Shown: in pieces, positions 10,545 through 15,679 of the stretch
How positions within the stretch are numbered: position 1 is the stretch's first letter
Layout of the letters: each line of letters begins with the position of its first letter
Source: Paraphysomonas bandaiensis
Lineage: Eukaryota; Protista; Chrysophyceae
DNA: 64,000 bases
NCBI GenBank assembly: GCA_965644295.1
Contig: CBFFRP010000615.1
Span: 14,268 to 78,267 of the forward strand
Reading direction: 5' to 3'
Notes under the pieces: model-generated
The model's database searches: none
What the model was told of the DNA's origin: nothing
What the model saw: only the letters and a program-made list of their open reading frames with translations
Translations under genes and position numbers: made by a program

Positions 10545-10966
10545 TGAAATGAATGTCTTATTACGTGTTTATTAAGAGTCAAAACTAATACAGCATTTTA
10601 TTTATTTAACGCTACAATAACTGCTTGTGCGTCACCTCAAGCACCAAGGTGCACCAACTTTCGCTCTATCGCTCAAAGCAAACGCAGTGAGCAAGCAGAA
10701 TGTTGACATACCTGATATATACGGACTTCAGGATTTTGGAGTCCTTGAGGTGAACAGCCCGGATGCCCTTGAGGTGGGACCATTCCCTGATCCCTGTTTA
10801 TTTCAAGGCCCAAAGAATTTCACACATGTGACACTTAATAGTGCCCCTTGTACCTTGTACCACACAAGCATTAGACAATGAGTGGGCGGAACAATATCTG
10901 CTGACTACATATAGCCTGCTCACGTTAGTTTCCCGCAGAACGCCACGAAAAGGTGCGAGCCAGGCT
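10545..10966 (-). mobile_element. SINE-like retroposon family A, near full-length with internal deletions
   Basis: Colinear with 53764-54240 and 57981-59388. Has a GAATG-type tail at the left end and a possible short TSD AGAGCAC on both sides. Confidence 0.78.
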
Positions 10967-11351
10967 TAAGAGCACTAATAACTAATAACAGTTGATTCCC
11001 GAGTAATGAAGGAGAGTGTTAGTGCTACTCCCTACACAATATATGCCTATGCACATGGAAGACGAAGATAAGACTAACACAACGTCGTATTCTTTATGAG
11101 ATATATTTTTCAGCTCACACTACCAACTATGACGTGTAAGTCAGACGTATACAACACATTTCCCCACTTTTACAAGTATACTTGGCTATTATATATATAT
11201 TCATTCAAATATAATTGATGCTCGTCAACACTATTACAGAATCAGCATTGACAGAAAGTGCTGTGCCCATATTTCAATGCTGAAATTTTCAGACGCACAT
11301 ATATCCAATCTTGTCCTGGTTAATCTCTTCAAGTGCAACTGAAATTCTAAT

Positions 11352-14300
11352 TCAATAATGGTCTTTGGCCACTCTAGTCAGGCGTCTCTGCTTTCTATAC
11401 GCGAATGGGTTTTCCGTAGAATGTGGAACTTTAGCAGGACCGTACAGAGCCTCATCTATCCAACTATCAGGATCCCTGATAACACCACCATGAAGAACCT
11501 TCGATGGAGCAGACAGAGTGGCTGCAATTCGTTCTTTGTCTTGTTGTTTCAAGTCTTCAGTGCTGTAAACAGATGGCCACATAGAAGTTCTTTTAGACCA
11601 ATGAGATATACGCTCCTGTACATTTCTAAGCACCTTCAACACCCTTTCTGATGCTCTGTGCTGGTTACCAAAAAGTGTTACACTCATATGGTAGCACTCC
11701 TGCATAACAGAAAGGGATTCCCTGAACTTCCCTGTCTCAGCATAAAAGACACCGAGATTGAACAGTGCTTTAATCAGATCCATGCTCATACCCTGACGAA
11801 CTACTGTATTCTCACAGTCGCCATCTTTCGAAGGAGTCCTTTTTCGGCGCTCGTCTACTACCATCTCATAGAGGGCTCGTGCGACATCAGGCTGTTCTAA
11901 CTCCATATAAACATAAGCAATATTGCTGATAACTGCGAGTGTATCATCATGGGTTTCTCCGAGAGTTACTTCACGTCCCACCAGGCACTTCATATACATC
12001 TCCTCAGCTTCTGAATACCTCCCTTGCTTGGTGAAGCAGTTGGCGAGGTTGAACATGCTCGTCAGGGCATCTACATGATGAACACCTAGACACTCAGACC
12101 TGTGTCCCAGACAAACAGAAAAGCATTTCTCCGCCTCCTCAAGCAACCCTTTGTCGTAATAATATACCCCAAGATTATTCAGCACACACAGTGTAACAGG
12201 ATCTTTGATGCCGTGTTCTGTACTATACTTTTTAAGTAGCTCTTTGAGGCTCTGTTCCGAAAGACGTTTTTTATTTTTTGCTGGCTTCATATTGCTCTCT
12301 TCACAGTGAGTGTCTTGTGCCCTAGGTGAGGACATGAGAACGATACGCCCAACAAGAGAAGGTCGCTTTTTCGTAGCTGAATTATTCGTATTCATTGGTT
12401 GGGACAATGACCTCGAAAACGTTCGACTCAGAGTCTGCTCTTTTTCATTAATTTGCTCTGCCAGTCGAGCTACCTGAATTCTGGTTTTATAAGCCTCCTC
12501 GGCGGCGAAAATGTGTAGGTCCTGTAAGTTTTAGTCATCGTGAAGGACCAAAAGATAGCCAGCGTAAGACCACTCACATTCTCATCAAGATTGCCACTAC
12601 CATCCTTGTCCAGCTCAACAAACCTCTACATAGACGATTACGAGACTACAGCATATGGTGCAGTGTAATACAGCGCCCAATACCTGTAGCCATGGGTCGA
12701 TGTCTTTTTCCTTGTTCAAACCATTCGTGTGCACCAACATGGCAATAAGGAAGTTCAACCGATCTACTTCCCCTCCCTCTACACACCATAGAATGATAAG
12801 AAAATTCGTTGAATATAGCATAAATATTAGAGCAGTATACAGTGCATACAGAACTACGTTACACCCACAGTCCAAACTCCGTATCAAACATATCAGTGGC
12901 ACAGTACAGTACTGCCAGAATACACGATGGTGATACCAGCTTCTCCTTGCATGGTGAGAATAGATGCAGCATCAAGCGGCTTGTTCAGCATGGCCATCCG
13001 TTTTTCCTCAAACGCTTTTTCTCTCTGAACCGAAGAGAAAGTCCCAATAGCAGCTGTCACTATGAGAACTGAAGCGAGTACGTAAAAAACGTTGAAAAGC
13101 CTGGTACAGGTAAAAGCTTTACGACAGAATTGTACGCAAGTTGCACGAGAAGATGACTACCCAAGATATCATAAGTTTATAGATGAGAATGGAGCAAATA
13201 AACTTAAAAGGGAATCAGGATGAGCTGCATTTTACCTTGACGTGTCTTTCTCAGGAATAAGATCACCATACCCAATACTCTGAGAGCCAAAATGCAAAAC
13301 AAGATATGAACTTAGCCCAAGCTACATATACATGCCCAAATATGCGGATATATAACAACCATGTTCACACCAATACAAAATGAAGAATAATAGCACATAT
13401 ATTCAAGGAAACCTACCAGAGTAGTAACTACGCTCCAGTATATACCAGATACGACGGACAGACCTTCATGAACACACATGAAGGCGGTGCCGACAGTGAT
13501 ACACATTAGAGTAATGATAACGCACAGGATTATTCTTTCCCGCTGTAGCACCTAAAACGACATCCATGTTAACACATCAGGGTCTCAACATCACATATTA
13601 ATAGAATCCTGGTACACACCCAATTTACCTACCGATAAAGGAGTACTAGTTTTGTCATGTCTGCTGTATATAAATTTGTCCTGGATATAGTCCAAAAGTG
13701 CATATGCCCAGTCTATCAAAATCTGTACCACAAATACAATACCCACAAGTATATATATCATGGTGAACACCCGTGATCCTGCAAAAAACTGCTTAGAATG
13801 GTACCGTCTAAATGGAAAAAGGACTACCATCTGTGTCCGGTGTAATGTCGCCATACCCCACAGTGGTCACTGAAAACATGAATAAGGTGGTCAAAAAATG
13901 TACATAAATATAGATGCTAGTCGGTACATGAAGTTATACATACATAGATTGCCAGGACTATATATCACTACAGTGCGATCTGAGCCTTACTTGAGACAGT
14001 TGTAAAATAAACACACTGCAACACCGTCCACTCCTGATTGTACTTATAGAACAGTAACCCGATACCATAATACAACATCACAACAAGAATATTATGCAGA
14101 GTGGAGTCGGAAGGGATGTTCCCTTTGGACTGCTGATCTCTCAGCCATCTCATAGTGCTGCCCGGCTGAACACTTTCTGCAGAGGAGACAGCCGACACTG
14201 AGGCAGAGACAGCGACCGGATGAGATGTTTCCGAAGTATCTGAACTATCAGTGGATTGATTCTGCTGTTCAGTTGACAGCATGAGAGCCAACTCGTCGAC

Positions 14301-14597
14301 AAGAGACACGGAGCGATCAGGTGCACTTCTATTGATACCGTACACCGGACGGGGGCTCGATCCTCTGACTGTATGCGGAGGAGCGAGAAACCCCTCGCAG
14401 TCCTCGTCATCCTCGTCCTCATCATCTTCATCGTCATCCGGATTGTCTCTATCTGTGTAGGGAGATGATGGCGATGTCTCTGGTGATGATGAGTGAGAGC
14501 GACAGCTGGTGCTGGTGCTGTGGATGGTTACGAGAGGAAACAGACCCCTGCCTGTGTCCTCATGCTCTCGATACGAGGAGTCAAGGGCTTGTAACAT
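11352..14597 (-). CDS. Two-pore-domain K+ channel (TPK/KCO-like, 4TM/2P) with EF-hand, fused to a C-terminal kinesin-light-chain-like TPR domain; 9 exons
   Basis: Spliced frame: CVYFTTVS|MTTVGYGDITP, GSRVFTMIYILVG, IYWSVVTTL|SIGYGDLIPE, RLFNVFYVLAS, EF-hand RFVELDKDGSGNLDEN|DL. The last exon (12521-11352) runs without a stop into TPR repeats (LNNLGVYY..G.LEEAE, SMFNLANCF..QGRYSEAE, HDDTLAVISNIA). Confidence 0.85.
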
Positions 14598-14749
14598 GAG
14601 GGTGTGGGTGGTTGTGGAAGAGTCTGAGTCTACTCACGCATCACTCACGCATCACTGGGAGTGAATCGTATAGACCTGCAGTGCTGTTAGCCTGCCTGTA
14701 TGTCTCATACGCGTGTATCGAGTATATTCTTCTGCTGTATAATCCTCTA

Positions 14750-14820
14750 CAGTACCTGTAGACCTGTGTACCTGTAGACCTGTGTACCTGTAGACCTGTG
14801 TACCTGTAGACCTGTAGACC
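14750..14820. repeat. 16-bp tandem repeat (GTACCTGTAGACCTGT) ~4 copies upstream of the K+ channel start
   Basis: Directly visible. An 11-bp duplication ACTCACGCATC lies at 14632-14653. Confidence 0.85.
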
Positions 14821-15679
14821 TCTATGCCATATACCTTCGTAGTGGGGTACATTGTATGTATCTATACTGCACTGTTCTTCCTACGTACCTCCATCAGTGT
14901 AGTGCAGGTATACGGCTGTAGTGTTCATATAACAGTCTTGTATGTCCAGAGCTGAGCCGAGGGCTCTGAGGAGGCAGTGGCTTATGCCTATGTGTGGAGC
15001 AGTTGCGTGAGTTGAATCTCGATCAGTGTCCTGATAAGATGGGCTCAGGTGACCCCCTATAGCAGAGCACTGTGTGAAGAAGGCTGTTGAAGCTGGTGCA
15101 TTGTCTTCAACTGTAACTGCAAGTTCAACTGATGAGCACCGACAGTGTGGCAGGTGTGCTACTGCTCATTGGGATGCACTTATACATGCTGCCATCACCT
15201 CGAGCCCATGACCCTATGTATAAATGGACAGGCGAGAGTTGGCATACGTGCTGATCCCTGGTAACAGCTGGCATGATGAGAGTGCTGAGAGCTTGGTATA
15301 TGCTGAGTACGGCAAGCGCAGAGTGCCTTATCAGTATGTCTCTATCGTGTGGGCCCTGCCCTCAACTTGAAGCAATAGCTAATGAATGTGTTGCAGAAAC
15401 GAGATGGAGGTCGGGGCAGAAAAGTTATGGGTAAGATTCGCACCAATATAGCCGAGGTAAGTAGTGCATTCCTTGTCGTACTGCGTTAAATTTGTGACAG
15501 ATATTCGATTATTTCAGTCGAAGTGAATATCAGGAAGTCGAGAATTTCTACGATGAATGGTGTAAGTTCTACACTAACTACTCCGACGTTTACTATTTCG
15601 CCTACTGCGTAATTAGTAGAAGCCAAGTGGACCAGCTTGGTAGATCCCTCCCAAGACATGTCCAGAAGGACACGTAATG

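Follow-up and report, generated by a model that had tools for sequence, protein, structure and literature searches.

One expressed chrysophyte gene encodes a TPK-type tandem-pore K+ channel joined to a kinesin-light-chain-like TPR domain

As a rule, the regulators of two-pore K+ channels are separate partner proteins; in plants, they include 14-3-3 proteins and kinases. Here, we describe a gene in which such a channel carries an additional protein-interaction domain on the same chain. The gene lies on the minus strand, at positions 14597..11352, of a 64,000-nucleotide (nt) stretch of the Paraphysomonas bandaiensis genome (contig CBFFRP010000615.1; the whole stretch is called the window below, and all positions refer to it). 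It is one expressed gene of a Paraphysomonas-type chrysophyte, a colourless phagotrophic marine flagellate, and joins a tandem-pore K+ channel of the TPK type to a tetratricopeptide repeat (TPR) domain like that of kinesin light chains (KLC). As an explanation of the whole, including its origin, a fused Ca2+-modulated dimeric K+ channel with a tethered TPR docking module appears on balance the probable one.

Gene structure and expression

Nine exons bounded by GT-AG introns, as proposed in the first-pass annotation of this DNA, join into a single open frame of 2451 nt (816 codons with a terminal stop only), and all eight introns are removed in transcripts. The supporting comparison covered window positions 10800-15200 (4401 letters) and the assembled contigs of four runs (X1, X3, X5 and X10). 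In X1, a single 2860-nt contig skips exactly the eight modelled introns; similarly, a single 2808-nt contig of X3, a run with another study and organism label, skips all eight at the modelled borders. These two contigs extend from about 11075/11084 to 14668/14686. The removed introns read CT..AC on the plus strand, which corresponds to GT..AG for the gene, and the X1 contig terminates at 11075 in a run of 21 T, that is, a poly(A) tail on the strand of the gene. Besides that, five of the eight joints, including both that flank exon 8, occur in the metatranscriptomes X5 (poly(A)-selected) and X10 (cDNA), both recorded as RNA. We read X1 as transcriptome data, despite its automatic label "probably DNA", because it holds 0.70 of the sampled words, which is about the exon share, compared with 1.00 in the genomic runs X17-X19; X5, X10 and the database proteins described below are independent of this reading of the data type. 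Altogether, these data show that the gene is real and expressed as one mRNA with one open frame.

RNA evidence across positions 12700-12300 had been proposed as a check of the fusion. Here, one X5 contig connects exon 7 via exon 8 to 1333 nt of exon 9, and the full-length X1 and X3 contigs span the region. Transcripts ending before about 12400 had been named as the observation that would speak for two separate products; instead, the longest contigs run from about 14686 to 11075.

The junction between channel and TPR domain is located inside one continuous genomic exon, exon 9 (11352..12521; placed by the model and the transcript joints), and the fusion is therefore encoded in the genome. This exon is free of stops from DLHIFAAEEAYK via SRSLSQPMNTN into the TPR region and up to the stop at 11352. 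The in-frame continuation from the channel into the TPR part, as first proposed, thus stands, while the 351 residues given for the TPR ORF reflect the TTG start chosen by the open reading frame (ORF) finder; the open exon has 389 codons. On the minus strand, the ORF list contains a 209-aa ORF (13968-14597), several short ones and the 351-aa ORF (11352-12407). As the initial annotation had remarked, the ORF track splits this real, intron-rich protist gene into seemingly unrelated fragments, because the ORF finder ignores introns.

Public transcriptome data already contain the fusion protein, without annotation. A word search with exon 9 led to P0001, the 527-aa product of a JGI metatranscriptome contig, with 100% identity. 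Its cluster includes P0156, a protein of 816 aa from transcriptome MMETSP1103, whose taxon id 36769 denotes the genus Paraphysomonas; P0156 agrees with the model at every residue except V708I. Both proteins carry Ion_trans_2 and TPR_12 (Pfam) on one chain, and in the environmental contig that is the source of P0001 (L023) exons 4-9 are spliced as modelled. A chimeric assembly, or read-through of two neighbouring genes, could in principle imitate such a fusion, but the junction falls within one genomic exon, independent transcript assemblies from culture and environment carry the fusion, and the protein search of the own genome, the counts of which are lower bounds, revealed no processed copy elsewhere. 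An artefact, to which we give practically no credence, is excluded by the reading frame, the transcripts, P0156 and L023.

Two single-base differences accompany these sequences. A C>T difference between genome and transcripts at 11681 accounts for V708I and occurs in X3, X10, P0001 and P0156, and a C>A difference from the genome at 14439 is found in X3 only. Both are probably strain variation.

Channel and EF-hand region

Channels of the TPK/KCO family have, in one chain, four transmembrane (TM) segments and two pores (4TM/2P); both pores contain GYGD, an extracellular cap is missing, and cytosolic EF-hands follow immediately on TM4 (PMC8619664). The fusion protein has this 4TM/2P architecture, the GYGD pair, the lack of a cap and the EF-hands after TM4 in common with plant TPK/KCO channels such as Arabidopsis TPK1, a placement made by architecture. 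In Pfam, the short channel exons alone gave almost nothing, and the domains are clear on the natural proteins P0001 and P0156, with Ion_trans_2 matching P0156 in two stretches (E 5e-30).

Exon 1 (13991..14597) contains the start codon, a disordered N-terminus rich in Ser, Asp and Glu (residues 1-146), TM1 (residues 163-188; about 14034-14111) and the start of pore helix 1, as delimited by the model, the transcript joint 13869/13991 and the pLDDT (the per-residue confidence score of AlphaFold) and secondary structure of the predicted fold. The first selectivity filter, TTVGYGD, is encoded by exon 2 (13828..13869; joints 13778/13828 and 13869/13991), and TM2 (residues 216-256) by exon 3 (13633..13778), which alone is a weak Ion_trans_2 match. 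Exon 4 (13417..13551) provides TM3 (residues 264-294) and pore helix 2, and exon 5 (13236..13279) the second selectivity filter, SIGYGD, with Ion_trans_2 at E 1.4e-12 on P0001; for exons 3 to 5 the model agrees with the transcript joints, and for TM2 and TM3 also with AlphaFold. TM4 (residues 322-364) and the start of a degenerate EF-hand 1 follow in exon 6 (12937..13100). Its acceptor at 13100 restores the frame and matches the transcripts (joint 13100/13236); a candidate acceptor at 13068 breaks the frame and was rejected. Exon 7 (12684..12778) comprises the remainder of EF-hand 1 and the entering helix of EF-hand 2, as judged from the model, the joints, the alignment and AlphaFold, and exon 8 (12578..12625), supported by the model and the joints, the EF-hand 2 loop DKDGSGNLDEN, which is invariant in relatives. 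The loop straddles the border to exon 9, whose first codon is its final D. The beginning of exon 9 (12402..12521) encodes the exiting helix of EF-hand 2, which is at the same time a long helix (residues 426-467) with the motif RSLSQP at its end, according to the model, AlphaFold and a pattern search.

The AlphaFold2 prediction was based on a 42-row alignment and has a mean pLDDT of 69 and a predicted TM-score (pTM) of 0.42, the relative placement of the domains not being reliable. It agrees with the two GYGD pore loops and four TM segments of the first-pass annotation, giving with confidence the order TM1-P1-TM2-TM3-P2-TM4, followed by EF-type units and a confident TPR region. Helices were predicted at residues 163-188, 216-256, 264-294 and 322-364 for the TM segments and at 192-204 and 298-310 for the pores. 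Only three residues separate TM1 from pore helix 1, and a cap helix is absent between them. Two helix-loop-helix units follow TM4 (residues 369-396 and 402-437), and the exiting helix of the second (426-437) runs on to residue 467. The loop of EF-hand 2, DKDGSGNLDEND, fits the EF pattern. Residues 1-146 are disordered, and pLDDT is below 50 for the whole N-terminus and the tail.

Among solved structures, TOK1 and K2P channels match residues 150-460 best by sequence (E about 1e-12). Animal K2P (KCNK) channels and fungal TOK1 accordingly have pore-domain homology and fold in common with the fusion. However, animal K2P channels lack EF-hands and carry an extracellular cap between TM1 and P1, whereas the fusion has EF-hands and no cap, and TOK1 has eight TM segments compared with four here; neither of them has the TPR domain found in the fusion.

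Word searches with the channel, EF-hand and linker part retrieved plain two-pore EF-hand channels with 38-45% identity as well as several longer channels (candidate lengths 290-922 aa and 449-1428 aa); among these channel candidates, a TPR was found only in the cluster of the fusion protein itself. The plain TPK channels with EF-hands from related protists and from this genome (P0153-P0155, P0160-P0162 and the paralogs L003, L005 and L007) are 327-454 aa long, lack a TPR and are 38-50% identical over the channel, the EF-hand pair and the early part of the helix that follows. Alignment and BLASTP place this similarity between residue 147 and about residue 450, where it stops. In agreement with the first-pass annotation, which had held that TPK/KCO channels end shortly after their EF-hands, the plain relatives stop 30-120 residues past the EF-hand 2 loop, whereas about 380 residues follow it in the fusion. 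Plant TPKs likewise end soon after the EF-hands; compared with them, the fusion adds about 350 residues of linker, TPR domain and tail.

The TPR domain

After the long helix, exon 9 encodes a disordered, basic and Ser-rich linker of about 50 aa (residues 468-515, 12258..12401; pLDDT about 26-30, composition). This is followed by the TPR domain (residues 516-740, 11583..12257), which AlphaFold folds into ten helices forming five TPR pairs with a pLDDT of 94-98 and an inserted loop at residues 656-665, and by a C-terminal tail of low confidence (residues 741-816, 11352..11582; model and AlphaFold) that ends in a TGA stop (11352-11354). In Pfam, exon 9 alone matches TPR_12 (E 2e-24) and also TPR_10; on P0156, TPR_12 reaches E 9e-23 and 80.6 bits, compared with a cut-off of 30.1 bits, and TPR_10 E 8e-22.

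The closest solved structures are those of kinesin light chains by both sequence and fold, as the description of the domain in the initial annotation had suggested. For residues 480-816, the best solved relatives are kinesin light chains 1 and 2, led by KLC2 (E 6e-27) and ranging to 1e-16. A Foldseek search with the model returned among its top 30 matches 28 KLC1/2 TPR structures and two fungal putative KLC, with K2P channels next; the KLC matches to the fusion TPR had a probability of 1.00 and TM-scores, normalized by target, of up to 0.79. Kinesin light chains 1/2 and the fusion have TPR_12/TPR_10 repeats in common, and four of the fusion repeats retain the Asn of the N-L-A/G signature. However, KLC has six repeats compared with five in the fusion, the identity is 20-24%, and the fusion TPR is attached to a membrane channel. 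The N-terminal heptad-repeat region, by which light chains bind the heavy chain, is absent in the fusion, and the matches in the Protein Data Bank (PDB) cover the TPR region only; the sequence upstream of it comprises the channel, the EF-hands and a helix whose homologues are the tails of plain TPK relatives.

The same repeat type is also found in the TPR_12 arrays of NLR-like, CHAT and TIR proteins. In an unrestricted HMMER search with P0001 against a library of 1.84 billion proteins, three of the five strongest TPR relatives scanned were TPR_12 arrays joined to CHAT, NB-ARC or TIR. The TPR domain might accordingly act as a ligand sensor, as in those proteins, with the channel as its effector, so that K+ flux would be gated by a molecule of viral, prey or stress origin, in defence or signalling. 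If true, this would be a sensor and channel in one polypeptide, an effector coupling not described for TPR_12 sensors or two-pore channels. We regard it as very unlikely, though: the fusion has no NTPase or other switch domain, its closest solved TPR relatives are kinesin light chains, and nothing ties the locus to defence. Moreover, the arrays of those proteins comprise 10-25 repeats with enzymatic or NTPase partners, in contrast to five repeats and a channel here.

Candidate motifs for intramolecular binding

An LFP-acidic motif autoinhibits kinesin light chains, which also bind Trp-acidic peptides. Short motifs of related kinds occur in the fusion protein: an LFP triplet near the N-terminus (residues 19-21, window 14535-14543), a run of 17 residues (53-69) consisting of Asp and Glu except for one Cys, and a Trp-acidic-like DPDSWIDE in the tail (residues 777-784, window 11451-11474). 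In addition, RSLSQP (residues 464-469, window 12396-12413), a perfect mode-1 14-3-3-type motif, marks the end of the long helix and the start of the linker. Many, although not all, plant TPKs have an N-terminal 14-3-3 site; in the fusion, by contrast, a pattern search found no mode-1 or mode-2 motif in residues 1-160, and RSLSQP, located after the EF-hands, is the sole mode-1 match.

Together with the precedent of KLC autoinhibition and the long flexible linker, these four motifs raise the tentative possibility of a TPR domain that works within the molecule, as a gating or autoinhibitory module, and that would bind one of the channel's own motifs and couple phosphorylation or Ca2+ to opening. 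We consider this a minor alternative to a module that docks partner proteins. The motifs are short and match a loose consensus, their conservation is not checkable, and the 14-3-3 pattern alone has a chance expectation of about 4%, as estimated from residue frequencies. Docking in cis of the LFP, acidic or Trp-acidic-like motifs in the TPR groove was considered and is unsupported by AlphaFold confidence, given the low pLDDT in both the N-terminus and the tail; none of the four motifs, RSLSQP included, is docked with confidence in the prediction.

Distribution and origin of the fusion

The initial annotation knew of no TPK with a TPR tail, and we found no second one. A scan of JGI metagenome contigs for TPK together with TPR gave three channel-only and five TPR-only loci and none with both, and a feature search of the ESM Atlas gave no usable match. 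In full-text literature searches, a TPR domain turned up on neither a TPK nor a K2P channel; TPR goes unmentioned in a cross-taxon survey of TPK evolution, and in a published co-listing of Ion_trans_2 and TPR_12 the domains are on different transcripts. The unrestricted HMMER search was swamped by proteins with multiple TPR repeats, all 150 matches listed covering about residues 220-380 of P0001 only, and is uninformative on other fusions. Since the word searches and scans are of limited sensitivity, the statement that no other example exists is provisional, and one chrysophyte lineage is so far the only one in which the fusion is seen.

Within the 62.6-Mb genome, the own-genome protein search (lower bounds, as above) located at least six further TPK-type loci with EF-hands, on contigs C324, C134, C432, C109, C408 and C297, which makes a sizeable family for a genome of this size. 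TPR_12 genes are numerous as well, and the TPK-type loci and TPR_12 genes are on different contigs. In the three best paralogs (L003, L005 and L007), no TPR was found in the 0.9-1.5 kb beyond the match. These paralogs contain an intron exactly at the position of intron 8 of the fusion, after LDE(E/N), a position shared with the plain TPK channels with EF-hands named above, and this intron is followed by a short last exon beginning with DLRL. From this comparison of sequences, the fusion most likely arose by extension of a TPK paralog's last exon: the short last exon of an ordinary paralog would have been extended into TPR coding sequence. A processed retrocopy was also considered and is unlikely, as near-identical matches in the own genome are found only in the window, exon by exon. 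The nearest TPR gene in the genome encodes a 745-aa protein consisting entirely of TPR, with 46% identity over 120 residues. Because the fusion TPR is only about 46% identical to it, the fusion is no fresh, undiverged accident, and an event that is not very recent is the simplest history.

Intron 8 retention and the integrity of the fusion

Intron 8 (12522..12577; 56 nt, phase 0) is spliced out in X1, X3, X5, X10 and L023 and retained in L013, a 2864-nt JGI contig with the ends of the X3 contig, from which introns 1-7 have been removed. In L013, the frame shifts after LDEN, and the contig was called as a truncated channel of 462 aa (P0157) and a separate TPR ORF of 347 aa (P0158). We take the spliced form as the main product because it was assembled in all four runs examined and in L023, although the proportions of the two forms are not readable from assembled contigs. 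The exiting helix of EF-hand 2 would be missing from the truncated product, which has the look of a splicing intermediate; retention of the intron could also be regulated.

These findings bear on the question of whether the fusion arose as an accident of one lineage and has little integrated function, or whether the gene gives separate products, namely a truncated channel and a TPR part that is dispensable or made alone. The split call of L013, the promiscuity of TPR_12 and its abundance in the genome, and the lack of a fusion ortholog in the searches made are all in line with this. We nevertheless judge it unlikely, since the spliced form recurs in every run examined and in L023, the retained-intron product resembles an intermediate, the TPR repeat signatures are intact with a fold of very high confidence, and the domain has diverged to about 46% identity from its nearest genomic counterpart.

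Proposed function

In our preferred explanation, that of a Ca2+-modulated K+ channel with a tethered docking module, the fusion protein would, judging from its families, dimerise like other two-pore channels and conduct K+. Cytosolic Ca2+ at EF-hand 2 may modulate gating, as in plant TPK1, and two flexibly tethered TPR solenoids below the pore could dock short peptide motifs of partner proteins. Such partners might position or adjust the channel and could be regulators, scaffolds or transport machinery. This function is drawn by analogy, and several observations weigh against it. The loop of EF-hand 1 is degenerate (QGEAEGGEVDRLN), whereas relatives keep DKDGDG. The loop of EF-hand 2, called canonical in the first-pass annotation, is present but only near-canonical, with Asp rather than Glu at position 12, and EF-hand_7 reaches 16.7 bits on P0156, below the 30-bit Pfam cut-off. 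Ca2+ control is therefore not assured. Besides that, an isoform retaining intron 8 would give the 462-aa channel without TPR, and as word searches and the metagenome scan did not find a fusion ortholog, conservation of the TPR tail is not demonstrable.

A natural fusion of this kind points to cooperation between TPK channels and TPR or 14-3-3-like scaffolds, and it may offer a compact system for studying the effect of a tethered docking module on the gating, trafficking and clustering of a leak channel. Its significance is limited by its occurrence in one lineage so far and by a function that we infer.

Untranslated regions and neighbouring transcripts

The 5' untranslated region (UTR) spans 89 nt (14598..14686), as both the X3 contig (record 8) and L013 start at 14686. 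It contains an 11-nt tandem duplication (window 14630-14652) that creates two overlapping upstream ORFs of three codons (14652-14641 and 14641-14630). Each reads Met-Arg-Glu-stop, with stop and start overlapping in TGATG, and they are located about 35-55 nt upstream of the main ATG. At the other end, a 3' UTR of about 277 nt (11075..11351) reaches to the poly(A) site, where the X1 contig ends with its loose end of 21 T; L013 and X3 end at 11084.

Within exon 1, numerous unrelated metatranscriptome contigs, with loose ends on either side, map to the Asp/Glu-rich coding run at window positions 14400-14440. This pile-up is a low-complexity mapping artefact and no evidence for an isoform.

Just downstream of the poly(A) site, window positions 10800-10946 match a very highly covered transcript contig, with a word depth in X1 of about 4800 compared with 123 for the channel gene. 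A 63-nt skip with non-canonical ends (10872/10936) is present there in X3 only. On the opposite side, a transcript contig of about 900 nt (window 14993-15200) begins roughly 300 nt upstream of the 5' end of the channel gene, and the intergenic spacer is therefore short.

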